A stretch of 64,000 nt of DNA from Macrostomum hystrix (lineage: Eukaryota > Animalia > Platyhelminthes): positions 2,356,001 through 2,420,000 of the forward strand of contig CATNEN010000030.1 of the NCBI GenBank assembly GCA_950097015.1, written 5' to 3'. A program made the translations under genes and the position numbers. A model generated the notes under the pieces. It did no database searches. It saw only the letters and a program-made list of their open reading frames with translations, and was not told the DNA's origin. Shown piece after piece: positions 45,521-63,654 of this stretch. Numbering within the stretch: the stretch's first letter is position 1; each line of letters begins with the position of its first letter.

Positions 45521-46119
45521 AATCCCATCCAATCCCATAGAAACTATTGTAAAAAAATCTGCGGGTAATAATTTCCTACCAAAAAGCAAATTTATTTGAT
45601 TACTTAAACAAAAAATCATTTAAGACGACACACCTGAGTAGGCTTCCGCAGGTGCCATATAATTCAATTTCATTTCAAGCCTCTAATATATAATATTATG
45701 GTAATTATATCGATTTCTTCAACAAATAGAACACCTCAGTATGAGCAAGCAGTTTCAAGCAGTTTGCATACAGACATGAACAGAATGAATCATCAAATGA
45801 CAAGAAAAAATTAACAGAAAGCTAACGTGCAATGTACAGATTTTGTACATGTGTCGCAAATTCTATGGTTTAAAGCTAGACAGATGCTCAGAGAATCCTA
45901 CTAAAGGACAGGTTTGTTGCTGTAATATTTTATGAACATGTACTTTTATTTGGAATCGCTGCATTACCTGATAGTGAGATCAAAGACAATTGTTTACCTT
46001 TTTACCCATGAAACAGTTACAGCACAATCACCTCTGAGTCTCCATCCCAAAAAATTATCTCAATTAAATCTAACTTCCCATCTGGAAACAACGTGCCTAT
46101 TGAATCCCCAGCATAAACC

Positions 46120-46435
46120 AACCAATATCCCAACGGAATCCCCATCTAACACCAATATCCGAACGGAATCCCCATCTAACACCAATATCCGAACGGAATC
46201 CCCATCTAACACCAATATCCGAACGGAATCCCCATCTAACACCAATATCCGAACGGAATCCCCATCTAACACCAATATCCGAACGGAATCCCCATCTAAC
46301 ACCAATATCCCAACGGAATCCCCATCTAACACCAATATCCCAACGGAATCCCCATCTAACACCAATATCCCAACGGAATCCCCATCTAACACCAATATCC
46401 CAACGGAATCCCCATCTAAAACGAATAACCTAACG
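46120..46435. repeat. 30-bp minisatellite (cccatctaacaccaatatccgaacggaatc)
   Basis: Tandem units read directly. Confidence 0.94.
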
Positions 46436-46625
46436 GAATCCCATAGCACATGAATTTTCCAATTCAAATTCCAATTCAAATTCCATATTAGGATCCCAAA
46501 AACGGAATTTTGTGGAGAAATCAACATCAGTCAATGCGCAGATGGTCTAGTCCTTAAATCTCTAGGACCAGACATTGCTGCTAACGAGGGAGTAAATATT
46601 GCTCCAAAGCGTTTCAAAGAAAGCA

Positions 46626-46873
46626 TCAAGCGTAAAACTCCCTCGTGGGCGCCTTCTGATACTCTGTAGTCGCTGGAGTCTTCTTGACCGGGTCCAGCGA
46701 ATACGAGCCCTCGTCCGCTTTTCGCACCCGGTAGATACAGAACGCTATCAGGCCTACTATAAGTAGGAGGGCCGCTACACCGCCGCCGACCAGGCCGGCT
46801 AGGGTGGCGGGCTGCAGCAGCGGCGACTCGGCCGGAGCCGCGGCCTCGGTTGTGCGGCCCGCCATGTTTGCGA
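46626..46873 (-). CDS. Sdc: Terminal exon encoding a syndecan-type TM and cytoplasmic tail
   Basis: Phase-1 acceptor ccttcacaacag|TC. Translation ...LAGLVGGGVAALLLIVGLIAFCIY-RVRKADEGSYSL-DPVKKTPATTEYQKAPTR-EFYA* shows GxxxG, the C1 region and the PDZ-binding EFYA. Confidence 0.9.
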
Positions 46874-49800
46874 CTGTTGTGAAGGGTTTGGGGATTGGGG
46901 TGCCGCGATTAGGAATAGAGGCTAGTCAATACCACAGGATCATTCACAACACATCTCTACACATCCCATCCCTTCACATCCCATCCCTTTACATCCCGTC
47001 CCTTGACATCCCATCCCTTCACATCCCGTCCCTTGACATCCCATCCCTTGACATCCCATCCCTTGACATCCCATCCCTTGACATTCCATCCTTTGACATC
47101 CCATCCCTTGACATCCCATCCCTTGACATCCCATTCCTTCACATCGCATCCCTTCACATCCCATCACTTGACATCCCATCCCTTAACATCCCATCCCTTC
47201 ACATCCCATCACTTGACATCCCATCCCTTAACATCCCATCCCTTGATATCCCATCCCTTGACATCCCATCCCTTCACATCCTATCCCTTGACATCCCATC
47301 CCTTGACATCCCATCCCTTAACATCCCATCCCTTGACATCCCATCCCTTGACATTCCATCCTTTGACATCCCATCCCTTGACATCCCATCCCTTCACATC
47401 GCATCCCTTCACATCCCATCCCTTAACATCCCATCCCTTGACATCCCATCCCTTGACATCCCATCCCTTGACATCCCATCCCTTGACATCCCATCCCTTG
47501 ACATCCCATCCCTTGACATTCCATCCTTTGACATCCCATCCCTTGACATCCCATCCCTTGACATCCCATCCCTTGACATCCCATCCCTTGACATCCCATC
47601 CCTTCACATCCCATCCCTTGACATCCCATCCCTTCACAACCTGTCTGATCCCATGCAGTCCTTGTGAATACTAAAAAATGAACAAACACAGGCAAGCGAA
47701 GATACGTGCGCATCATCAATACGTGCTCACCGTTGTGTCCTTTCACCGGCTTATTCTGGAATAAAAAAGTATTTGCTCTTTAGTTAGTTTTCTTACACTA
47801 AATGCTGCCCACGTACTAACTAATATTTCTCAAGCAGCCAACACTCGCAATGGACTAATTATATAAGAAAACAATAGCGGCAATTGGTTGAAACAGCTGC
47901 GAAAGACAGAAAAATCGATAATTCTATTTTTCAAGTGGGGTTTCGTTGTAGGCCTTCGCCCGTTGGCTGTCCATCATCATGCGAGTGTACTAGTGGGCGC
48001 TGCAGATCCCAAGGGGATAACACAAGCACGCATTACAGAACCACACAAATATTTTCTACCAGGGTAGGAATCGACTGGTAGGGGAGAAGTGTATTCATCA
48101 TTTTTTCTACTCCCCGCATCCCTAGTGCCACTCGAAAGTTTGGAGAATTCCGATTTGAAGATGGAATGCAAATAGACTAAGAAATGAGAAATTGGAGACG
48201 GGAGAGTAGGGGAGAAATTAAAGTAGGATAAGTGACCTCAAGGGCGTAAATTGCACAATTCAAGGGTGAGGTGGGTAGAGGGTAGAAGAAGGATAAAGGA
48301 AGGGAGAGTGTAAAAAGAGGATGGGGAAGGGACAGTGTAGAAGAAGGATGGGGAAGGGGGAGTGTAGAAGAAGGATGGGGGAAGGAAGAGTGATGGGGAA
48401 GAGAGAGTGTAAAAGAAGGATGGGGAAGGGAGAGTGTAGAAGAAGGATGGGTAAGGGAGAGTGTAGAAGAAGGATGGGTAAGAGAGAGTGTAGAAGAAGA
48501 ATGGGGAAGGGAGAGTGTAGAAGAAGGATGGGGAAGGGAGAGTGTAAAAGAAGGATGGGGAAGGGAGAGTGTAGAAGAAGGATGGGTAAGGGAGAGTGTA
48601 GAAGAAGGATGGGTAAGAGAGAGTGTAGAAGAAGAATGGGGAAGGGAGAGTGTAGAAGAAGGATGGGGAAGGGAGAGTGTAGAAGAAGGATGGGTAAGGG
48701 AGAGTGTAGAAGAAGGATGGGGAAGGGAGAGTGTAGAAGAAGAATGGGGAAGGGAGAGTGCAGAAGAAGGATGGGTAAGGGAGAGTGTAGAAGAAGGATG
48801 GGTAAGGGAGAGTGTAGAAGAAGGATGGGGAAGGGAGAGTGTAGAAGAAGGATGGGTAAGGGAGAGTGTAGAAGAAGAATGGGGAAGGGAGAGTGTAGAA
48901 GAAGGATGGGTAAGGGAGAGTGTAGAAGAAGGATGGGTAAGGGAGAGTGTAGAAGAAGGATGGGGAAGGGAGAGTGTAGAAGAAGGATGGGTAAGGGAGA
49001 GTGTAGAAGAAGGATGGGGAAGGGAGAGTGTAGAAGAAGGATGGGTAAGGGAGAGTGTAGAAGAAGGAAGGGGAAGGGAGAGTGTAGAAGAAGGATGGGG
49101 AAGGGAGAGTGTAGAAGCAGGATGGGGAAGGGAGAATGTAGAAGAAGGATGGGGGAAGGAAGAGTGATGGGGAAGAGAGAGTGTAAAAGAAGGATGGGGA
49201 AGGGAGAGTGTAGAAGAAGGATGGGTAAGGGAGAGTGTAGAAGAAGGATGCGGAAGGGAGAGTGTAGAAGAAGGATGGGTAAGGGAGAGTGTAGAAGAAG
49301 GATGGGAAGGGGAGAGTGTAGAAGAAGGATGGGGGAAGGAAGAGTGTAGAAGAAGGATGGGGGAAGGAAGAGTGATGGGGAAGAGAGAGTGTAAAAGAAG
49401 GAAGGGGAAGGGAGAAGGTAGAAGAAGGATGGGAAAGGGAGAGTGTAGAAGAAGGATGGGGGAAGGAAGAGTGTAGAAGAAGGATGGGGGAAGGAAGAGT
49501 GATGGGGAAGAGAGAGTGTAAAAGAAGGATGGGGAAGGGAGAGTGTAGAAGAAGGATGCGGAAGGGAGAGTGTAGAAGAAGGATGGGTAAGGGAGAGTGT
49601 AGAAGAAGGATGGGGAAGGGAGAGTGTAGAAGAAGGATGGGTAAGGGAGAGTGTAGAAGAAGGAAGGGGAAGGGAGAGTGTAGAAGAAGGATGGGGAAGG
49701 GAGAGTGTAGAAGCAGGATGGGGAAGGGAGAATGTAGAAGAAGGATGGGGGAAGGAAGAGTGATGGGGAAGAGAGAGTGTAAAAGAAGGATGGGGAAGGG

Positions 49801-52800
49801 AGAGTGTAGAAGAAGGATGGGTAAGGGAGAGTGTAGAAGAAGGATGGGTAAGAGAGAGTGTAGAAGAAGAATGGGGAAGGGAGAGTGTAGAAGAAGGATG
49901 GGTAAGAGAGAGTGTAGAAGAAGGATGGGTAAGGGAGAGTGTAGAAGAAGGATGGGGAAGGGAGAGTGTAGAAGAAGAATGGGGAAGGGAGAGTGTAGAA
50001 GAAGGATGGGTAAGGGAGAGTGTAGAAGAAGGATGGGTAAGGGAGAGTGTAGAAGAAGGATGGGTAAGGGAGAGTGTAGAAGAAGGATGGGTAAGGGAGA
50101 GTGTAGAAGAAGGATCGGGAAGGGAGAGTGTAGAAGAAGAATGGGGAAGGGAGAGTGTAGAAGAAGGATGGGTAAGGGAGAGTGTAGAAGAAGGATGGGT
50201 AAGGGAGAGTGTAGAAGAAGGATGGGTAAGGGAGAGTGTAGAAGAAGGATGGGGAAGGGAGAGTGTAGAAGAAGGATGGGGAAGGGAGAGTGTAGAAGAA
50301 GAATGGGGAAGAGAGAGTGTAGAAGAAGGATCGGGAAGGGAGAGTGTAGAAGAAGGATGGGTAAGGGAGAGTGTAGAAGAAGGATGGGGAAGGGAGAGTG
50401 TAGAAGAAGAATGGGTAAGGGAGAGTGTAGAAGAAGGATGGGTAAGGGAGAGTGTAGAAGAAGGATGGGGAAGGGAGAGTGTAGAAGAAGAATGGGGAAG
50501 GGAGAGTGTAGAAGAAGGATGGGTAAGGGAGAGTGTAGAAGAAGGATGGGTAAGGGAGAGTGTAGAAGAAGGATGGGGAAGGGAGAGTGTAGAAGAAGGA
50601 TGGGGGAAGGAAGAGTGATGGGGAAGAGACAGTGTAAAAGAAGGATGGGGAAGGGAGAGTGTAGAAGAAGAATGGGGAAGGGAGAGTGTAGAAGAAGGAT
50701 GGGGGAAGGAAGAGTGATGGGGAAGAGAGAGTGTAAAAGAAGGAAGGGGAAGGGAGAGTGTAGAAGAAGGATGGGAAAGGGAGAGTGTAGAAGAAGGATG
50801 GGGGAAGGAAGAGTGTAGAAGAAGGATGGGGGAAGGGAGAGTGTAGAAGCAGGATGGGGAAGGGAGAATGTAGAAGAAGGATGGGGAAGGGAGAGTGTAG
50901 AAGAAGGATGCGGAAGGGAGAGTGTAGAAGAAGGATGGGAAAGGGAGAGTGTAGAAGAAGGATGGGAAAGGGAGAGTGTAAAAGAAGGAAGGGGAAGGGA
51001 GAGTGTAGAAGAAGGATGGGGAAGGGAGAGTGTAGAAGAAGGATGGGGAAGGGAGAGTGTAGAAGAAGGATGGGTAAGGGAGAGTGATGGGGAAGAGAGA
51101 GTGTAAAAGAAGGATGGGGAAGGGAGAGTGTAGAAGAAGGATGGGTAAGGGAGAGTGTAGAAGAAGGATGGGTAAGAGAGAGTGTAGAAGAAGAATGGGG
51201 AAGGGAGAGTGTAGAAGAAGGATGGGTAAGGGAGAGTGTAGAAGAAGGATGGGGAAGGGAGAGTGTAGAAGAAGGATGGGGAAGGGAGAGTGTAGAAGAA
51301 GGATTGGGAAGGGAGAGTGTAGAAGAAGGATGGGGAAGGGAGAGTGTAGAAGAAGGATGGGTAAGGGAGAGTGTAGAAGAAGGATGGGTAAGGGAGAGTG
51401 TAGAAGAAGGATGGGTAAGGGAGAGTGTAGAAGAAGGATGGGTAAGGGAGAGTGTAGAAGAAGGATGGGTAAGAGAGAGTGTAGAAGAAGAATGGGGAAG
51501 GGAGAGTGTAGAAGAAGGATGGGTAAGGGAGAGTGTAGAAGAAGGATGGGGAAGGGAGAGTGTAGAAGAAGGATGGGGAAGGGAGAGTGTAGAAGAAGGA
51601 TTGGGAAGGGAGAGTGTAGAAGAAGGATGGGGAAGGGAGAGTGTAGAAGAAGGATGGGTAAGGGAGAGTGTAGAAGAAGGATGGGTAAGGGAGAGTGTAG
51701 AAGAAGGATGGGTAAGGGAGAGTGTAGAAGAAGGATGGGTAAGGGAGAGTGTAGAAGAAGGATGGGGAAGGGAGAGTGTAGAAGAAGGATTGGGAAGGGA
51801 GAGTGTAGAAGAAGGATGGGGAAGGGAGAGTGTAGAAGAAGGATGGGTAAGGGAGAGTGTAGAAGAAGAATGGGGAAGGGAGAGTGTAGAAGAAGGATGG
51901 GTAAGGGAGAGTGTAGAAGAAGGATGGGTAAGGGAGAGTGTAGAAGAAGGATGGGTAAGGGAGAGTGTAGAAGAAGGATGGGTAAGGGAGAGTGTAGAAG
52001 AAGGATGGGGAAGGGAGAGTGTAGAAGAAGGATGGGTAAGGGAGAGTGTAGAAGAAGGATGGGTAAGGGAGAGTGTAGAAGAAGGATGGGTAAGGGAGAG
52101 TGTAGAAGAAGGATGGGTAAGGGAGAGTGTAGAAGAAGGATGGGTAAGGGAGAGTGTAGAAGAAGGATGGGTAAGGGAGAGTGTAGAAGAAGGATGGGGA
52201 AGGGAGAGTGTAGAAGAAGGATTGGGAAGGGAGAGTGTAGAAGAAGGATGGGGAAGGGAGAGTGTAGAAGAAGGATGGGTAAGGGAGAGTGTAGAAGAAG
52301 GATGGGGAAGGGAGAGTGTAGAAGAAGAATGGGGAAGGGAGAGTGTAGAAGAAGGATGGGTAAGGGAGAGTGTAGAAGAAGGATGGGTAAGGGAGAGTGT
52401 AGAAGAAGGATGGGTAAGAGAGAGTGTAGAAGAAGAATGGGGAAGGGAGAGTGTAGAAGAAGGATGGGTAAGGGAGAGTGTAGAAGAAGGATGGGGGAAG
52501 GAAGAGTGATGGGGAAGAGAGAGTGTAAAAGAAGGATGGGGAAGGGAGAGTGTAGAAGAAGGATGCGGAAGGGAGAGTGTAGAAGAAGGATGGGAAAGGG
52601 AGAGTGTAGAAGAAGGATGGGGGAAGGAAGATTGATGGGGAAGAGAGAGTGTAAAAGAAGGATGGGGAAGGGAGAGTGTAGAAGAAGGATGCGGAAGGGA
52701 GAGTGTAGAAGAAGGATGGGTAAGGGAGAGTGTAGAAGAAGGATGGGAAGGGGAGAGTGTAGAAGAAGGATGGGGGAAGGAAGAGTGTAGAAGAAGGATG

Positions 52801-55800
52801 GGGGAAGGAAGAGTGATGGGGAAGAGAGAGTGTAAAAGAAGGAAGGGGAAGGGAGAAGGTAGAAGAAGGATGGGAAAGGGAGAGTGTAGAAGAAGGATGG
52901 GGGAAGGAAGAGTGTAGAAGAAGGATGGGGGAAGGAAGAGTGATGGGGAAGAGAGAGTGTAAAAGAAGGATGGGGAAGGGAGAGTGTAGAAGAAGGATGC
53001 GGAAGGGAGAGTGTAGAAGAAGGATGGGAAAGGGAGAGTGTAGAAGAAGGATGGGAAAGGGAGAGTGTAGAAGAAGGATGGGGGAAGGAAGAGTGTAGAA
53101 GAAGGATGGGGGAAGGAAGAGTGATGGGGAAGAGAGAGTGTAAAAGAAGGAAGGGGAAGGGAGAAGGTAGAAGAAGGATGGGGAAGGGAGACTGTATAAT
53201 AAGGATGGGGAAGGGAGAGTGTAAAAGGAGGATGGGGAAGGGAGAGTGTAGAAGAAGGATGGGGGAAGGAAGAGTGTAGAAGAAGGAGGGGGAAGGAAGA
53301 GTGATGGGGAAGAGAGAGTGTAAAAGAAGGAAGGGGAAGGGAGAAGGTAGAAGAAGGATGGGTAAGGGAGAGTGTAGGATAAGGATAAAGGAAGGGAGAG
53401 TGTAGAGAAAGGATGAGACTTAAAGGGAATGTCGAGGGTAGGAAATAATTGAAAATGCAAATACTGAAGCAGCAAGGAGTCATTCCCAACACGAGGCCTT
53501 CTGACCCAGAAACCAAATGCGGAATGGAATTTTAATTTCAAGTTTAAGTTAACTTACCAAACGTGGCTGCTCTCACTGCCCCACTGTCAATTACTCGTAT
53601 TATTTCGCTACGCTCGAGAAAGTTTTCGAACCAATTCCAAAACAGCTGCAAGCAGTGCAACTTAAAGAAGAAGAATTAGAAGCCCTAGTTGTGTTTTCTG
53701 TTTTAGCTGTTTGCTTGACTAATCCTGGGTCCGGCCTGTTGAGAAGCAGTCGGCTACCATGCCCTGTGTCTGAGTGGCTAGTTGGTCTAGTTGCTAGCCC
53801 GCTGCACTCGCGCACTCTTGGCCTCGCTTTCTCTTCACTCCTCGGCCTCTTCATAGTTCTCTTCGACTAGAAATGGCCCCGCCGATGCTTTGCCCTCCCC
53901 TATCCACTCCTCCTCCCCTCTCATTGCGGTCCCCGCTTTGCAAACGTGCGGTTGCCGGATTGGAAGCGACCGCCTCCCGGCCCAAATCCGGCAGACCTCC
54001 CCGCGCTGATGAGGCACTGAGGCTGCGGACGGGGAAGAGACGGGCAGCTGAGTGCCCCGGGGGGGGGTCGCGGGCGAGCGCTTGGCGGCGGGGTTGCCTG
54101 GCTGGGGAATCAAGAAAAGCGACACGGCCATAGTGACGGGGAGGAGGCGGCGGGTAGAGAAGGAGGTGGAGAGGGGCGGACATCGGCCCGCTGCCCGTAG
54201 CTCGGAGGCTTCGGAAATGAACGGCCGGGAATTGGAAATAGCTGGTGGGTAGCTTATTTGGTCAGCGTGTGATGCTGCCCGCTCCACCACCCCAACCTCC
54301 CCTTTCCTTCTGCATCACTCCTCCCACTGCGCGACACTCTCAACTTTCTCCACTGGTCATCATTCAGTTTGCGGCGCATGCATGGGAGAGTTCCCAGTTC
54401 CGTCTGATCCCAAAGATCCCAGCCTAAGAAACGAGTTCTGAGCCTCGGCTGCTGTTCGTGGCTGCTGCTTGGTTGGTGCTTTAGTTTCTCACCGGGCAAG
54501 ATCATGCAGGACTAAGAGCCTTAACTAGCGGCACAACTGCTAAATCTATAGGGGAAGAAGTTTTATTTGATCTTAATATCCCATGTACCCTCCCTAGTCT
54601 CCGAATATCCTAGATCCCTAGAAGCCAGGCGAGTCAATTGGAGCTATCAATCAAACACTTGAAGCGACACAAGCACAATGCATTCTGTCAGGCACCAACT
54701 GATCCTGGCTGGCTGAGAAATCAATAATGCAGATGATTTCAGCCATTGCGCCATAAAACTTTGTGCGCAAGGACACGGGGAAGCAGTAGTGATGAGGGAG
54801 AGATGAGGGGGAGATGAGGGGAGATGTGGGAGACGGGGGTGATGAGGGGGAGATGAGGACAAAATGATGGAAAGTAACGATGTATGAGACGAGAGAAAGA
54901 GAGCTAGAGAGAGGCGGCAAATGAGATACAGATGGGGATGAGAAAGGAAAAGGATTTGGATGGGATTGGAGGCTTAAAATGGGGTCAGAGAGATGGGGAT
55001 ACAGCTCGGCATGCTGCCTTGACAGAGCACGGGATTATTTTGATTTCATGGAACACTGACAAAAATAAATTGTGCATCGCCGCTTTCTTTCTTTAAGAAA
55101 AAGTACTTGTCTTTTTACTGAAAGCAAAACAGAAATCGAACGGGGAGAAATAAGCAATGTTAATTAGTGTTAATTAGTGGAGAGCGAGCAAGGAAATTTG
55201 AAATTAGAAAGTGGGGATCGAAGAAGTGGGCAAAAATTAGGAAGGTCTAAAGTAGGAAGAATATTGGAGCGGTGCATTAGCATCTGCCCAGGCTAATTTG
55301 TATTTCAAGGTGAAATTAGCAGTCTGTCCGGACTGCAGAAATTGCTTTGCACGCCTTCTTTTATCCCTTCCTTTCGCTCCCGGTCGGGCGGCTTCTAGTA
55401 GCAGAATTGCAAAGAAGCAAAGGGCTGAAAAGGGCCCCAGTAACTGCTTCAGCTATCAGCTTTTACTGCTACCCTGGCAAACTCGGTCCAAACCGGAGCT
55501 TGACCAGTAGCTTGCTTGCTTTGTTACAGTTGTTCCCTGCTTGCAGCAGGGGAGCTGTGTCGCTGAAAACACGGACTTTTTGTTTAATCATGGGGTAAAA
55601 CTTCTTGTTACAACGAAATCCCCATTTTTGTTAGGAATCCCCTGCCTCGTGAAGTGAGGAATCCCCTTCCTCATGAAGTGAGGAATCCCCTGCCTCATGA
55701 AGTGAGGAATCCTCTTTCTCATGAAGTGAGGAATCCTCTTTCTCATGAAGTGAGGAATCCTCTTTCTCATGAAGTGAGGAATCCTCTTTCTCGGTTGAAT

Positions 55801-58800
55801 CCCAGGAGAAATGAAACCGAATTCGGTAAAACGGTGGCCAGAGTGTTTTTATGCTTTCTTAAACAGGAGCAAGCAAATTAAGGGCCTGTTCTTCTGCTCT
55901 TCTTTCCAAGCCGTCTTTGGGATGGAAAGGAAAGTTTGGAGGCCATTTTGACGAGCAATGAAGGGGAAGCGAGCGAAGGGGATTTCGCTAGCGGCAAATT
56001 GCCCATTTGGGATTTGGAAAATAAGAGGGCCAGATCCCACTTCAACTGAATCAATTTGCAAGATTGGCTCAGAGGAGGCCCCGAGGGCCTGGGGGTGAGT
56101 CCCACCGCCTTCTTGTTCGTCTCTCATTTTCTACATTTCCGAACTCTCATATGAACTCTGCATCATCTCTCTACGTATTTTCTTCTTTGTTCAAAACCTC
56201 TATCTTTAATCGATTCATCCTTATCCCCATACATCTTTATCCCCATTTATCTTTATCCCCAAACATCTTTATCCCCATACATCCTTATCCCAATCCATCT
56301 TTATCCCCAATCATCCTTATCTCAATCCATTCTCATCCTAATACATCCTCATCCCAATCCATTCTTATCCCAATCTATCCTTATCCCCATTTATCCTTAT
56401 CCCAACCCACATTCATCCCAATCCATCCCTATCACTATCCATCCTTATCCCAATCCATCCTTATCCCAATCCATCCTTATCCCAATCCATGCTCATCCCA
56501 GTCTATCCTTATCCCAGTCTATCCTTATCCCAGTCTATCCTTATCCCAGTCAATCCTTATCCCAGTCTATCCTTATCCCAGTCTATCCTTATCCCAATCC
56601 ATCCTCATCCCAATCCATACTCATCCCAATCCATACTCATCCCAATCCATACTCATCCCAATCCATACTCATCCCAATCCATACTCATCCCAATCCATAC
56701 TCATCCCAATCCATACTCATCCCAATCCATACTCATCCCAATCCATACTCATCCCAATCCATACTCATCCCAATCCATACTCATCCCAATCCATCCTTAT
56801 CCCAATCCATCCTTATCCCAATCCATGCTCATCCCAGTCAATCCTTATCCCAGTCTATCCTTATCCCAGTCTATCCTTATCCCAGTCTATCCTTATCCCA
56901 GTCTATCCTTATCCCAATCCATACTCATCCCAATCCATCCTCATCCCAATCCATCCTTATCACTACCCATTATCATCATATTTCTTCCAAATCTTGGCTA
57001 TGCGTTTAATTTCAGAAACATTCCCGTCTCTTAATCTTGTTCTTTATTAAAACTACGAGTATTTCTCTTTACCTATCATAATCTTTACTTAGCCAAACCT
57101 CTACTCATTCCAATCAAACCGGCTGTTCTTATAGACAGGTACTCAAGAGAGGTTGAGAGTGACAGAATGAGGGTGGCACCAGTCAATGTCAATCAATATT
57201 GATTGATGGCCCATCACCTCACCAGTTTTGGGGAACAATTGAATTTTTCCTAAAATTTGGCATTTCTACTCCCCTAGAAAATTTCCCACTTTATCAAATT
57301 TAAATTTGATAATCACGCTATAAATGAAGAGACATTATGATAAAATAGACTACTTAGCCCAGTAGTAACAATAGAGTATGAATATAGCAATTTACCTCTT
57401 TCTTATCGCCGAGTTTTGCAGAATTTCCTTTGGAATCTAGTTCTGTAGTCTGGTCTGTAATTTTTTCAGTAAAAATATGTTTCAAAAAGCATTTCATAAA
57501 TTCCTAACCTTCTCGATCAATCAATCAATCCATCAACTAATCAATAAAAAACTTTAACTAATAATCAAATTTCATGATTCACTCAGGCAGTCAGTCCCTT
57601 GGTCAATAATTGACCCATTAGCCAGTGGAGCAAAAATCACTCAACTAATACTCGTAAGGTCAACCGCTCAATCAATCAACAAATCAGGTCGATCAATCAA
57701 TCAATAAATTATTCAGGTCAATCACTTGATCAATCAACCAATCAGGTCAATCACTCAATCAATCAACCAATCAGGTCGATCAATCAATCAATCAACCAAT
57801 CAGGTCAATCAACCAATCAATCAACCAATCAGGTCAATCAACCAATCAATCAACCAATCAGGTCAATCAACCAATCAATCAACAAATCACGTCAATCACT
57901 CAATCAATCAACCAATCAGGTCAATCACTCAATCAATCAACCAATCAGGTTGATCAATCAATCAATCAACCAATCAGGTCAATTCACTCGATCAATCAAC
58001 CAACAAGGTCAATCACTCGATCAATCAATCAACCAATCAGGTCAATCACTCGATCAATCAACCAATCAGGTCAATTCACTCGATCAATCAACTAATCAGG
58101 TGAATCACTCGATCAATCAACCAATCAGGTCAATTCACTCAATCAATCAACCAATCAATTCGAACCAATTGCTTCTCTCACCAATGCTCTGTTGCTGTGG
58201 TTCCGGAACTGGCCCGAACCAGAACGAACCGGACAGAACCGGTATGTTGGCAAAGCTGCCATCGTCAAACTCGCTCTCCAACAGCTTGCGGATGGCCGCT
58301 ACCGTGTCCTCCGAGGCCGGGTGGCCCACGGAGGTAATGTTTGCCGTCACCAGCACGACGCTCATTTTCCTGTTAAGCGTTGAGATTAATTATAGAATTA
58401 TAAAGCTTTTGCTTAGAAGGCCCGATTTTCGATAATGAGGTCAGTTTGTTGATAAGAGTAGGCAGTTTATTGGTTAGAGTGTGCAGTTTGTTGATTAGAG
58501 TAGGCAGTTTATTGGTTAGGGTGGGCAGTTTATTGATGAGAATAGGCAGTTTATTGATAAGAGTAGGCAGTTTATTGGTTAGAGTGGACAGTTTATTGAT
58601 AAGAGTAGGCAGTTTATTGGTTAGAGTGGGCAGTTTGTTGATAAGAGTAGGCAGTTTATTGGTTAGAGTGGGCAGTTTTTCGATAAGAGTAGGCAGTTTA
58701 TTGGTTAGGGTGGGCAGTTTATTGATAAGAGTAGGCAGTTTATTGGTTAGAGTGGGCAGTTTTTCGATAAGAGTAGTCAGTTTATTGGTTAGAGTGGACA

Positions 58801-61800
58801 GTTTATTGATAAGAGTAGGCAGTTTATTGGTTAGAGTGGACAGTTTATTGATAAGAGTAGGCAGTTTATTGGTTAGGGTGGGCAGTTTATTGATAAGAGT
58901 AGGCAGTTTATTGGTTAGAGTGGACAGTTTTTCGATAAGAGTGGTCAGTTTATTGGTTAGGGTGGGCAGTTTATTGATAAGAGTAGGCAGTTTATTGGTT
59001 AGGGTGGGCAGTTTGTTGATAAGAGTCATAGACTAGCTGTTGTCGCCGATAAAAAAATTCAAGTTTCAGTTGGCACTTTCGCTCTTTGGCACTCTCGAGA
59101 TGGTTAACGACACTTGCGTCATACATTTAGGCCAGCCTATAGGACACAATTTCGAGAGGCTGAAAGTGTCGCATTGCAGGCCTATTTGTCGAAAACAAAT
59201 CTATCTTCGCTGAGAGTCCGTCTTGAACAAAAGCTTTGTGGATACACACTGAAGTGTAGCAACTTCGCAACGGAATAGGCTAGTCAGGAAATGGTCCACT
59301 ATGGTTATAGAACAACTTTTAGAACAAGTGTTTGCTGCCCATTTGCTGCACTGCAAACTGACGCACTCGATTTTTTTGCAAGCATCTGTAAGGCATTATG
59401 ATCTGAGTGTTTCATGTGAATAGCGTGGGAAAGTCCGAATAAAGAAGAAGAGAGACAGGAAGAGACTGGAATGGAAGATAAGAGGCTGGAACGGAAGCTA
59501 AGAGGCTGGAACAGAAGATAAGAGGCTGGAACGGAAGCTAAGAGGCTGGAACAGAAGATAAGAGGCTGGAACGAAAGATAAGAGGCTGGAACAGAAGATA
59601 AGAGGCTGGAACGGAAGATAAGAGGCTGGAATGGAAGATAAGAGACTGGAATGGAAGATAAGAGGCGGGAATGGAAGATAAGAGGCTGGAATGGAAGATA
59701 AGAGACTGGAATGGAAGATAAGAGGCGGGAATGGAAGATAAGAGGCTGGAATGGAAGATAAGAGACTGGAATGGAAGATAAGAGACTGGAATGGAAGATA
59801 AGAGGCGGGAATGGAAGATAAGAGACTGGAATGGAAGATAAGAGACTGGAATGGAAGATAAGAGACTGGAATGGAATATAAGAGACTGGAACGGAAGATA
59901 AGAGGCTGGAACAGAAGATAAGAGGCTGGAATGAAAGATAAGAGACTGGAATGGAAGATAAGAGGCGGGAAAGGAAGATAAGAGACTGGAATGGAAGATA
60001 AGAGGGGGAATGGAAGATAAGAGGCTGGAATGGAAGATAAGAGGCTGGAATGGAAGATAAGAGGCTGGAATGGAAGATAAGAGACTGGAATGGAAGATAA
60101 GAGGCGGGAATGGAAGATAAGAGACTGGAATGGAAGATAAGAGACTGGAATGGAAGATAAGAGACTGGAATGGAAGATAAGAGGCTGGAATGGAAGATAA
60201 GAGGCGGGAATGGAAGATAAGAGACTGGAATGGAAGATAAGAGGCTGGAATGGAAGATAAGAGACTGGAATGGAAGATAAGAGGCGGGAATGGAAGATAA
60301 GAGGCTGGAATGGAAGATAAGAGACTGGAATGGAAGATAAGAGACTGGAATGGAAGATAAGAGACTGGAATGGAAGATAAGAGACTGGAATGGAAGATAT
60401 GAGACTGGAATGGAAGATAAGAGGCGGGAATGGAAGATAAGAGACTGGAATGGAAGATAAGAGGCTGGAATGGAAGATAAGAGACTGGAATGGAAGATAA
60501 GAGGCGGGAATGGAAGATAAGAGGCTGGAATGGAAGATAAGAGACTGGAATGGAAGATAAGAGACTGGAATGGAAGATAAGAGACTGGAATGGAAGATAA
60601 GAGACTGGAATGGAAGATAAGAGACTGGAATGGAAGATAAGAGGCGGGAATGGAAGATAAGAGACTGGAATGGAAGATAAGAGACTGGAATGGAAGATAA
60701 GAGACTGGAATGGAAGATAAGAGACTGGAACGGAAGATAAGAGACTGGAACGGAAGATAAGAGGCTGGAATGGAAGATAAGAGACTGGAATGGAAGATAA
60801 GAGACTGGAATGGAAGATAAGAGACTGCAATGGAAGATATGAGGCTGGAATGGTGCAGCCTCGCTGTCCCAAGAAGTTTAGTGGGCCCGCCTTCTGGCTG
60901 ATCGTCACTGAATTGATTTGTCGATCCGTGCTTCTCAAGATTATGGGGGAGTGCTTTTCTGAGTGAGAGTGAGTCAGGAGTAGATGGTCCTTCCAGTTGG
61001 GAAATATATATTTTTTATCTCCATTCGTCGGAACTAAATCGAGTAGCGCCCCTCCGACTGGATCTAACAATTTCTTGAACGGACCAGCGGACAGAGAGCA
61101 TTGTAAGAGCATTATGGGTACTTTACGAAAATTGATGTTGAATTATGGCAGCCGTGTGCAAGAAGCGCAGGGACAGAGAGTAGGACCTTAGATTTAGAGT
61201 AAACAGGCATGACATATAGGACAGCAATGACCCCAGATGTGACAGCAAGGTGACAGCAATGACCCCAGATGTGACAGCAAGGTGACAGCAATGACCCCAG
61301 ATGTGACAGCAAGGTGACAGCAATGACCCCAGATGTGACAGCAAGGTGACAGCAATGACCCCAGATGTGACAGCAAGGTGACAGCAATGACCCCAGATGT
61401 GACAGCAAGGTGACAGCAATGACCCCAGATGTGACAGCAAGGTGACAGCAATGACCCCAGATGTGACAGCAAGGTGACAGCAATGACCCCAGATGTGACA
61501 GCAAGGTGACAGCAATGACCCCAGATGTGACAGCAAGGTGACAGCAATGACCCCAGATGTGACAGCAAGGTGACAGCAATGACCCCAGATGTGACAGCAA
61601 GGTGACAGCAATGACCCCAGATGTGACAGCAAGAACCTCAGATGTGACAGCAAGAACCTCAGATGTGACAGCAAGAACCTCAGCTGTAACAGCCAACATA
61701 TCAGATATGACAGCTAACACATCAGACATGACCGCTAACACATCAGATATGACAGCCAACACATCAGATATGACGGCTAACACGTCAGATGACAGCCTAT

Positions 61801-63654
61801 ATCTCATGTATGACAACCAAAACCTCAGGTATGACAGCCTATATCTCAGGTATGACAGCCTATATCTCAGGTATGACAGCCTATATCTCAGGTATGACAA
61901 CCTATATCTCAGGTATGACAGCCTATATCTCAGGTATGACAACCTATATCTCAGGTATGACAGCCTATATCTCAGGTATGACAGCCTATATCTCAGGTAT
62001 GACAGCCTATATCTCAGGTATGACAACCTATATCTCAGGTATGACAACCTATATCTCAGGTATGACAGCCTATATCTCAGGTATGACAACCTATATCTCA
62101 GGTATGTCAGCCTATATCTCAGGCATGACAGCCTATATCTCGGATAAGAGAGTCAAAGCTCACCGGAAGTTCTCGACCCGCACCAGCTGAGAGCCCTGGA
62201 AGGACTTAAAGAGTTTGTTAAGCTCAGTTTCAATACTTTTGGCGCAGTTTTGAAACACTTTGCTTCTCGGATTGTGCAGGTTGTGTTTCCACTTGTAGTG
62301 TAGACCGATCGTGAATCTGAGCTTCAGTTGGCGACAGCTCGATGCCAGCTGTCCTGGCGGGCTGTGGGTGCCCGGAATCGGCCGGCCCGTCAAGGCGTCG
62401 ACGCAGTAGCAGAAGGACCTCGGCGGACTTTCGCACTGCCAACCAGCGTAGAGACTGGAGTTGCTCAAGCTGCAGACTGGCCGGTAGGGCAGGTGGCTCA
62501 GCTGCGTTGCCAGGTAGGCTGAGCACGGGACAGCTGGGGTGCGAAATAGGATCACAAAATGGGGATCTGGGATCATTGTGACGTAATATTGGGATCTGGG
62601 ATCATTGTGACATTACTGAGGGATCTTGGATCATTGTATAAAAATTTAGGGATATGGGATCATTGTAGCATAATATGGGGATCTAGGATCATTGTAGAAA
62701 AAATTAGGGATCGGGATCATTGTAACAGAATATTGGGATCTGGGATCATTGTGACATTCAGTGATCTGGGATCATTGTGACATAATATGGGGATCTGGGA
62801 TTATTGTAGCATAATATTGGGATCTGAGATCATCGTGACATAATTTAGGGATCTGGGATCATTGTGACATAATTTAGGGATCTGATATCATTGTGACATA
62901 ATATGGGGATCTGGGATTATTGTAGCATAATATTGGGATCTGAGATCATCGTGACATAATTTAGGGATCTGGGATCATTGTGACATAATTTAGGGATCTG
63001 ATATCATTGTGACATAATATGGGGATCTGGGATTATTGTAGCATAATATTGGGATTTGGGATCATTGTGACATAATATAGGGATCGGGGATCATTGTGAC
63101 GTCATATGGGGATCTGGGATCTTTGTGACTTAATTTAGGGATCTGGGATCATTGTGACATAATATCGGGATCTGGGATCATTGTGAAATAATTTAGGGAT
63201 CTGGGATCATTGTGACATAATATTGGGATCTGGGATCATTGTGAAATAATTTAGGGATCTGGGATCATTCTAACATAATTTAGGGATCTGGGGTCATTGT
63301 AACAAAACTTATCGATCTGAGATAGTTGTGAAATAACATGGCGATCTGGAGCGGCATATTTGTTTTAGTTATGCATTTGGGAGAATTTGGCGCCATTAGT
63401 TGAGCTTTGATAATTGCGTCTTGATGGAACATGAAAGAAAAAACTTTTTCTTTAAAATCATGGAAATTTAAAGTCTTTAAGATCTCATCTTTAAATATTT
63501 AAACGTTTGCCTCAAACTAAAGCTATATTTATGGCTCGCAGATTTTAGTTAAAAGTACAAAGTGACCTCAATTAGGCCGAAGCCCTTCAGCCGCAGCAGT
63601 ACAAATTGCACTTTAACCGATTACCTCGAGTTAGATTTGCTGCGTTAGATTTTT
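46626..63654 (-). CDS. Hypothetical joined model: thyroglobulin-1, SEA, stalk, syndecan TM/tail; 5' end probably outside the window
   Basis: Phase-compatible GT-AG exons 63654-63625 (1/1), 62533-62164 (1/2), 58369-58182 (2/1), 57454-57396 (1/0), 47755-47731 (0/1), 46873-46626 give one open frame. The small exons and the joins are inferred. Confidence 0.55.
46960..47640. repeat. 15-bp minisatellite (gacatcccatccctt)
   Basis: Tandem units read directly; intronic. Confidence 0.96.
48290..53410. repeat. About 5.1-kb 27-bp purine-rich minisatellite (ggatgggtaagggagagtgtagaagaa) with higher-order variants
   Basis: Tandem units; + strand almost free of C. Source of the 1700-aa artefact ORFs. Confidence 0.97.
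55630..55790. repeat. 24-bp minisatellite (gaagtgaggaatcctctttctcat)
   Basis: About six tandem units. Confidence 0.9.
56200..56970. repeat. 16-bp minisatellite (cccaatccatactcat) with degenerate flanks
   Basis: Tandem units read directly. Confidence 0.9.
57665..58160. repeat. (caat)n-based compound repeat with caggt interruptions
   Basis: Read directly. Confidence 0.9.
58182..62533 (-). CDS. Thyroglobulin type-1 domain plus SEA domain exons
   Basis: Exon 62533-62164: PC...YRPVC...Y...QC...FCYCVD...G.PIPGT...C (six-Cys TY), then LRFTI...W...L.NP.S..F......IE..L..LF (SEA N-half). Exon 58369-58182: KMSVVLVTANI...VAAIRKLLESEFDDGSF...SGSFWF (SEA C-half). The phases (2) match. Confidence 0.85.
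58440..59030. repeat. 21-bp alternating (42-bp dimer) minisatellite (gataagagtaggcagtttatt / ggttagagtgggcagtttatt)
   Basis: Tandem units read directly. Confidence 0.94.
59455..60855. repeat. 20-bp minisatellite (gaggctggaatggaagataa)
   Basis: Tandem units read directly. Confidence 0.96.
61215..62145. repeat. Compound array: 32-bp (gacagcaatgaccccagatgtgacagcaaggt) grading into 21-bp units (atgacagcctatatctcaggt)
   Basis: Tandem units read directly; shared gacagc core. Confidence 0.95.
62560..63335. repeat. 30-bp minisatellite (gggatctgggatcattgtgacataatttag)
   Basis: Tandem units read directly; begins next to the TY exon acceptor. Confidence 0.93.

Follow-up and report, generated by a model that had tools for sequence, protein, structure and literature searches.

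The 64,000-nt stretch of Macrostomum hystrix DNA analyzed here (contig CATNEN010000030.1, positions 2,356,001 to 2,420,000, hereafter the window) carries on its minus strand the 3' part of a gene that we read, with a probability of about 0.88, as a single flatworm syndecan gene whose ectodomain contains a thyroglobulin type-1 (TY) domain and a SEA domain, and which additionally produces a short transcript from an internal promoter. This reading is based on the domains of the encoded protein, on splicing seen in RNA from the C-terminal half of the SEA domain (SEA-C) to the cytoplasmic tail, on an alternative first exon and on a conserved gene structure. Syndecans are type I transmembrane proteoglycan core proteins, and the window would contain about two thirds of the coding sequence, counted from its 3' end and judged by the ortholog from Macrostomum lignano. 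An earlier reading of the same DNA, made from the sequence alone (the sequence-only reading), had taken the exons for a chimeric receptor in which an EpCAM-like ectodomain is joined to a syndecan transmembrane (TM) segment and tail. The chimera does not hold up, as M. lignano has an orthologous syndecan with the same domain order and introns. A false lead is thereby removed, the gene being a normal flatworm syndecan and not a new chimeric receptor, and the internally promoted, ectodomain-less transcript is a small, testable addition.

Exons and domains of the window protein

Six minus-strand exons, read base by base, all show AG at the acceptor and GT at the donor side (slashes mark exon borders below). 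A candidate 30-nt exon at 63625-63654, placed by its splice sites and phase (ttttag/..CTCGAG/gtaatc), encodes ..KSNAANLTR and exits in phase 1. The exon for TY and the N-terminal half of SEA (SEA-N) spans 62164-62533 (ccccag/..CTTCCG/gtgagc) and ends in ..ENFR with its final codon split cg/g. The SEA-C exon (KMSVVLVTANITSVGHP...), which also holds the start of the stalk, lies at 58182-58369 (taacag/..GCATTG/gtgaga) and is followed by a 59-nt stalk exon (DQTTELDSKGNSAKLGDKKE) at 57396-57454 (ttacag/..AAAGAG/gtaaat), by a 25-nt micro exon at 47731-47755 that encodes NKPVKGHN and passes from phase 0 to phase 1 (ttccag/..ACAACG/gtgagc), and by the last coding exon at 46626-46873 (acaacag/..TGA), which encodes a juxtamembrane stub, the TM segment and the C1, V and C2 (EFYA) regions up to the stop. 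Joined in phase these exons read without a stop as ..KSNAANLTR(g/ct)A-VPC.., ..ENF(cg/g)R-KMSVV.. and ..QQSI(g/ac)D-QTTEL..GDKKE/NKPVKGHN(g/tc)V-ANMAGRTTE...EFYA, and the exact borders, GT-AG sites and matching phases bear out the six in-phase exons that had been proposed. The predicted junction 62164>58369 would join ..GAGAACTTCCG of the TY/SEA-N exon to GAAAATGAGC.. of the SEA-C exon. The 30-nt exon is a candidate only; the true 5' exons, expected to encode the signal peptide and the Ser-Gly sites, would lie beyond the window end. Because the 59-nt and 25-nt exons together make 84 nt, they are either both used or both skipped, and the inclusion form alone was seen in RNA contigs. Joint skipping would keep the SEA-C exon in frame with the last exon and give a product in the length class of the M. 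lignano protein.

On the 62-kb exon Pfam recognizes Thyroglobulin_1 (PF00086; E 1.9e-7; 30.8 bits against a cut-off of 20.6) together with the N-terminal half of SEA (PF01390; E 6.9e-6; 26.6 bits against 26.4), and on the last exon, at 46629-46865 of the minus strand, Syndecan (PF01034; E 1.2e-17; 64 bits against 25.2). The TY domain has its six cysteines in the arrangement C-x16-C-x12-QC-x8-CYCVD-x21-C. Direct reading of the TM segment and tail gives GLVGGGVAALLLIVGLIAFCIY-RVRKADEGSY-SLDPVKKTPATT-EYQKAPTREFYA followed by the stop, with a GGxxG-type motif in the TM segment (GLVGGGVAAL), RVRKADEGSY as C1, a V region and EFYA as C2. The hallmarks of syndecans are a GGxxG-type dimerization motif in the TM segment, a C1 region of the form R-M/V-[RK]-K-x-DEGSY and a C2 region with an EFYA end. 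The SEA-C exon scanned alone gave no Pfam match, and the open reading frame (ORF) over the stalk exon gave only a sub-threshold match to PTP2 (15.6 bits, cut-off 27). The SEA-C exon aligns to a V(T/V)SVGH motif conserved in the M. lignano protein PAA65095.1 and in fluke proteins, and its VLSGSF lines up with the final strand of SEA in the model of the ortholog.

The SEA autoproteolysis motif G/S[VI]VV marks only the self-cleaving subset of these domains. The window reads FRKM/SVVL at this position, without the glycine, as the sequence-only reading had stated, and its SEA domain is predicted to be non-cleaving. That reading had likewise seen no clear acidic Ser-Gly site. None is present in the in-window exons, whose single Ser-Gly (in VLSGSF of SEA-C) has no acidic neighbors, but this absence comes from where the window ends: the sites of the ortholog lie in its first two exons, so those of the window gene would lie upstream of the window end. 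From the ortholog we infer that the window gene, too, encodes a proteoglycan.

Transcripts of the locus

Four small RNA runs from one study (X2-X5) were available, of which X2, X3 and X4 were aligned to 53,450-58,450. Of the words sampled across 45550-46880, which covers the last exon and the presumed 3' untranslated region (UTR), X2-X5 contain between 35 and 76%. The aligned contigs are at least 99% alike to the window, depth over introns is zero and spliced joints are present; the joints and the zero intron depth are the grounds on which runs X2-X4 were taken as RNA of the same species. One 101-nt contig, X3 contig 8, consists of CAACAGAGCATT from the end of SEA-C, 57455-57396, which includes the entire stalk exon, AATAAGCCGGTGAAAGGACACAACG, which is the entire micro exon, and TCGC, with which the last exon begins. 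Each of these strings was checked against the window, and the anchors are exact. The micro exon is also matched exactly by loose ends in X2, X3 and X4, which continue 4-5 bases into the last exon (TCGC/TCGCA). Junctions 58182>57454, 57396>47755 and 47731>46873, three of the four proposed from the sequence, are thus borne out by X3 contig 8, which places ectodomain and tail on one transcript from SEA-C to the EFYA exon. This contig ends 29 nt beyond the stalk exon, where its end would be a forced branch of the 31-mer graph if a second transcript form shares the micro exon.

Such a second form is present. Three contigs, X2 contig 5 (710 nt), X3 contig 7 and X4 contig 9, with starts at 53837, 53827 or 53790, all reach 53558, where a consensus donor (TTG/GTAAGT) is found, and each then continues with the micro exon, common to both transcript forms, and the last exon; the 430 nt of X2 contig 5 beyond 53558 are accounted for by 25 + 248 nt and ~157 nt of 3' UTR. 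The staggered contig starts, none of which has a loose end upstream, are what a first exon would give, but a transcript start is not provable from contigs. RNA contigs define an alternative non-coding first exon at 53558-53837 (minus strand, 5' end approximate). Directly upstream lies a 600-bp GC-rich island (53800-54400) with a GC content of 0.64-0.66 and an observed/expected CpG ratio of 0.8-0.9, which is presumed, from its composition and its position relative to the contig starts, to be an internal promoter. The locus gives two kinds of transcript, one long and SEA-containing and one short, and the internal start with a transcript that leaves out TY and SEA is the new observation, a modest detail.

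What the short transcript could encode is limited. In the reading frame that enters the micro exon there are stops, the last of them five codons before the junction, and no ORF with a signal peptide or Ser-Gly sites was found on the minus strand at 53.5-57.4 kb. The first in-frame ATG lies at 46865 (gcaaacATGg), in the last exon, and the potential product of 79 amino acids (aa) comprises a 22-residue stub, the TM segment and the full tail. The short transcript could therefore encode at most a 79-aa ectodomain-less syndecan, which, if translated, would amount to a gene-encoded version of the stub that syndecan shedding leaves in the membrane. The leader region also holds an 84-aa ORF (53600-53854) and a 13-codon upstream ORF (ATG at 53760). 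A blastn search for the alternative first exon in the 71-kb intron of M. lignano gave no match, and tblastx gave repeat matches only.

The short contigs raise the question of whether two genes are present, an upstream TY-SEA gene and an independent syndecan gene starting at ~53.84 kb, with the SEA-to-tail contig a product of rare read-through splicing. In three runs EFYA contigs begin at 53790-53837 without the SEA exons, and these short-form contigs are deeper (5.5-11.8) than the contig that includes SEA-C (3.9). Contig depth, however, cannot rank isoforms, and the 53.8-kb exon has in-frame stops and no signal peptide, so that a normal syndecan ectodomain could not be made from it. Moreover, M. 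lignano and a liver fluke have TY, SEA and tail in one product, in the fluke on an uninterrupted transcript contig, and the intron positions are common to M. lignano. That the short form cannot encode a conventional syndecan speaks for a single gene with an internal promoter and against two genes, and we consider the two-gene explanation very unlikely. The sequence-only reading had itself favored a single gene and had named a separate promoter for EFYA transcripts near 54 kb as evidence that would speak against it. Starts at ~53.84 kb are indeed seen, but the exon is non-coding and the SEA-containing form coexists with the short one. The single gene is supported by the RNA that joins SEA-C to the EFYA exon, by the M. 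lignano ortholog, which is one protein, and by the common introns.

The introns are filled with minisatellites; a 5.1-kb array of a 27-mer unit at 48277-53415, identified with Tandem Repeats Finder, takes up the greater part of the 9.6-kb intron that separates the stalk and micro exons. Introns that are almost wholly tandem repeats, among them this array and a 32-mer array of 100% identity, are hard to assemble, and a mis-join across the long minisatellites might have set unrelated exons together. Against such a mis-join, the RNA contigs splice across both repeat-filled introns in the assembled order, and M. lignano has the same exon order and a very long intron (71.5 kb); we give this explanation next to no weight.

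Further features of the single gene and its transcripts concern repeats and the 3' end. The presumed 3' UTR (45575-46625, minus strand), with an AATAAA near 45592-45597, is placed by RNA words and has a provisional end point. Inside it, at 46121-46442, lies a 30-mer minisatellite (10.7 copies, 97% matches) that appears transcribed, given that as many as 76% of the words sampled from 45550-46880 are present in the RNA runs. The 32-mer array, at 61220-61633 in the intron between the TY/SEA-N and SEA-C exons, has 12.9 copies and is either very young or assembly-collapsed. A further run, X1, from another organism, matches the window only with 21-25-nt pieces of GATT-type repeats, at 57515-57536 and 58135-58159; the apparent joint 57536>58135 was rejected as splicing, because 62 foreign letters stand between its two sides and the matches are chance repeat matches.

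The Macrostomum lignano ortholog

A phmmer search with the TY/SEA-N exon against 1.84 billion representative proteins returned 23 matches, mostly unrelated multi-TY proteins. The sole match to span TY and SEA in one stretch was M. lignano PAA65095.1 (BOX15_Mlig001759g1), a complete hypothetical protein of 445 aa that carries the UniRef name 'Thyroglobulin type-1 domain-containing protein'. Its order is signal peptide, acidic Ser-Gly region, six-cysteine module, SEA (Pfam 24.1 bits), stalk, TM segment and syndecan tail (Pfam E 7.5e-17). Its first two exons contain MKALQISLLLVAIQ.. and GSGSGSG..DDEDLG..SGDG, and its C-terminal part reads ..YRIRKADEGSYSLDP..REFYA and ..YRIRKADEGSYSLDPAKK..YEKAPSREFYA. 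The TY/SEA-N exon aligns to residues 166-278 with 32% identity (E 5e-18), and the last exon aligns to the tail with 68% identity (E 1e-26). A word-index search with the TY-SEA part of PAA65095.1 found PAA65095.1 itself only; the ectodomain evolves too fast for such a search.

Mapping of PAA65095.1 by exact match on its 89-kb gene revealed a common structure. A phase-1 intron precedes TY, three codons ahead of the first cysteine (Y-LPC versus A-VPC in the window); the SEA intron splits the same Arg codon after Phe (TTTCG/gtgagc versus CTTCCG/gtgagc); a micro exon, entered in phase 0 and left in phase 1, precedes the last exon by some hundreds of bases (28 nt versus 25 nt); and a very long intron precedes this micro exon (71.5 kb versus 9.6 kb). 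The two proteins also share the TY module, SEA, the stalk, the GGxxG TM segment and the C1/V/C2 tail (RKADEGSYSLDP..REFYA). They differ in that the identity over TY and SEA is only ~32%, the M. lignano TY being too divergent for Pfam, and in that the window has one extra intron, between SEA-C and the stalk. The N-terminal Ser-Gly exons are known in M. lignano, whereas those of the window gene lie outside the window. M. lignano keeps Gly-Ser at the SEA cleavage site (FRRG/SILA, residues 276-283), whereas the window has FRKM/SVVL (58360-58369), and the sister species may thus differ in ectodomain self-cleavage (G/S versus M/S). A 216-aa 'gene' within the M. lignano syndecan intron (84576-85480 of the 89-kb locus) was rejected as an open frame in a minisatellite.

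A second syndecan-like locus of M. lignano is represented by fragments (P0017, P0053 and P0054) that have Ser-Gly sites and SEA, with TY largely gone, and all its gene models break off at the FR/ intron that is conserved here. The genus Macrostomum thus seems to carry another syndecan-like gene, whose TY domain has decayed; if this is true, two syndecans in one invertebrate would be at odds with PMC8061687 and PMC1464127, which speak of a 'single invertebrate syndecan'.

The fold of the SEA domain was approached through the ortholog. The M. lignano TY-SEA region was folded with an alignment that held the window exons as separate rows, at a mean predicted local distance difference test score (pLDDT) of 58. 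Its SEA part, at pLDDT 65-84, has the order beta-alpha-beta-beta-alpha-beta, and VIA-align gave MUC16 SEA5 at Z 14.1 (root-mean-square deviation 2.2, 109 aligned), the TMPRSS6 SEA domain at 13.9, 1ivz at 12.8 and 2e7v at 10.7, compared with at most 7.6 for unrelated ferredoxin-like folds. The window domain is hence assigned to SEA by Pfam for its N-terminal half and by the ortholog model for its fold.

Several points weigh against reading the locus as one TY- and SEA-bearing syndecan gene with a short internal form. The RNA link from SEA-C to the tail is a single 101-nt contig with a depth of 3.9 in one run, and its anchors of 12-13 nt and 29 nt, though exact, fall just below a 31-letter bridging rule. 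Junction 62164>58369 is not among the joints seen in reads and is supported by homology, as a conserved intron. The library type of the runs is not recorded, and their RNA origin is deduced from joints and depth; contigs, moreover, measure neither abundance nor true transcript starts. The exons for the signal peptide and the Ser-Gly sites would lie outside the window, so that proteoglycan status is carried over from the ortholog, while the ~32% ectodomain identity and the second M. lignano locus leave one-to-one orthology unproven. Lastly, the structural models have a low overall confidence (pLDDT 55-58), and their TY part is poorly modeled.

With the syndecan gene read in this way, a putative arrangement of the protein can be outlined. 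From the N-terminus it would comprise a signal peptide and acidic Ser-Gly sites (both expected from the ortholog), TY, SEA, a hydrophilic stalk, the GGxxG TM segment and the C1-V-C2 tail. As is established for syndecans in general, glycosaminoglycan chains attached to the Ser-Gly sites near the N-terminus would capture ligands at the tip, the GGxxG motif would mediate dimerization, and the EFYA tail would bind PDZ proteins of the syntenin/CASK type. TY and SEA would form a folded, membrane-proximal pedestal in which, by analogy, SEA may serve as a rigid, non-cleaving spacer that resists shedding and TY as a possible protease-inhibitor or binding module. A second promoter in the long intron would yield the short transcript, in which the non-coding leader exon is followed by the micro and last exons and whose 79-aa product, if made, might by analogy compete for the partners of the tail.

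Comparison with EpCAM and with other syndecans

EpCAM and TROP2 resemble the window protein in their order of TY, SEA-type domain and single TM segment and in having no SEA autocleavage motif; EpCAM has been described with the layout TY, SEA-like domain and TM segment, its C-domain being classed as a divergent SEA (PMC7349879). This resemblance might suggest a lineage-specific chimera related to EpCAM/TROP2, with an EpCAM-like TY and SEA-like ectodomain fused to a syndecan tail, and Foldseek does align ~200 columns of the M. lignano model to EpCAM (rank 8, E 2.5e-3, TM-score 0.28), an alignment that arises from the succession of TY and a SEA-type domain in the two proteins; Atlas feature scores of 0.80 serve as a lead only. 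The structural scores speak otherwise. The Z scores of EpCAM (7.2) and TROP2 (6.5) against the M. lignano model are those of the ferredoxin-fold background, compared with 11-14 for mucin and TMPRSS SEA domains. In a profile search of PDB sequences, EpCAM was matched at E 0.028 and through TY only, below the TY domains of saxiphilin (1.2e-5) and IGFBP-2 (0.0016), while the SEA domain of ADGRF1 was matched at 2.3e-5. Pfam found neither the EpCAM N-domain (PF18635) nor the EpCAM/Trop-2 C-domain (PF21283) on the window exons or PAA65095.1, and the tail is that of a syndecan and not the EpCAM cytoplasmic tail. EpCAM differs further in having an N-domain of its own and a short, unrelated tail without EFYA, and in not being a proteoglycan. 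The architecture is, in addition, common to distant flatworms, and parts of it occur in molluscs and echinoderms, which argues against a recent fusion, and we attach very little credence to an EpCAM-related chimera. Of the EpCAM likeness that had been proposed, the TY-SEA-TM layout is real, and neither fold nor profile gave a sign of a specific relationship.

Taken jointly, the occurrences of TY and SEA in flatworms, of TY in bivalves and of SEA in echinoderms allow a farther-reaching, and in our view unlikely, proposal for the syndecan family. A TY and/or SEA pedestal would be ancestral to bilaterian syndecans and lost in vertebrates and model ecdysozoans, making the disordered ectodomain the derived state; the TY-SEA-TM cassette of EpCAM/TROP2 would stem from the same ancestral receptor; and the flatworm 79-aa isoform would regulate syndecan signaling by competing for PDZ partners or by dimerizing with the full-length form.

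Close counterparts of the window protein beyond Macrostomum are the liver-fluke syndecans. The second-best relative of PAA65095.1 is encoded on an uninterrupted 2-kb transcript contig, and its cluster includes 'syndecan' of Clonorchis sinensis (GAA51344.1), Opisthorchis viverrini XP_009167809.1 and an O. felineus protein. The fluke protein (422 aa) has a signal peptide, TY (Pfam E 3.7e-5), a SEA-like beta-alpha-beta-beta-alpha-beta region with the VSVGH motif, a stalk, a TM segment and EFYA. The top three matches of its model are all SEA domains (Gpr126 at Z 10.7, TMPRSS6 at 8.5 and MUC16 at 8.3). It differs from the window protein in that its SEA domain is undetected by Pfam and has weaker model support (Z 8-11), and in that its stalk is much longer and it has no obvious acidic N-terminal Ser-Gly cluster.

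Bivalve syndecans share acidic Ser-Gly sites followed by TY, a TM segment and an EFYA tail. With a clam transcript encoding two TY domains and Syndecan as the query, proteins combining PF00086 and PF01034 were found in Mercenaria, Mya, Dreissena, Mactra and Magallana gigas (K1PIE7), under names such as 'Syndecan' (Magallana gigas K1PIE7), 'SDC-like protein' (Mya arenaria) and 'Cell surface proteoglycan' (Mactra). A mostly molluscan ESM Atlas cluster of 72 members has the same PF00086 and PF01034 architecture, which we take as a lead only. The bivalve proteins differ in having two TY domains, and Pfam found no SEA in the one member scanned (P0035). Echinoderm syndecans, by published description, have SEA in the middle of the ectodomain, as the window protein does, and differ in that TY is not reported and in belonging to the deuterostome lineage. 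SEA was noted in a syndecan of the brittle star Ophiocoma wendtii (contig 358) in 2015, in a combination called 'novel' (PMC4336488), and a 2023 review covered SEA-containing syndecans of holothurians and sea stars (PMC10381214).

A literature search found no paper describing TY-bearing or flatworm syndecans; the text of a 2021 syndecan review contains neither 'thyroglobulin' nor 'SEA' (PMC8061687), and a 2006 comparative study represented planarian and mollusc syndecans by their cytoplasmic domains only (PMC1464127). Two general statements of the sequence-only reading consequently fall. The architecture is not undescribed, as TY with a SEA-like domain in fluke, TY in bivalve and SEA in echinoderm syndecans are on record, and the absence of globular domains from syndecan ectodomains is true of vertebrates and model ecdysozoans only. 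The textbook view of syndecans as unstructured stalks rests on vertebrates, flies and nematodes, and the architecture of the window protein is on database record, partly published and little discussed.

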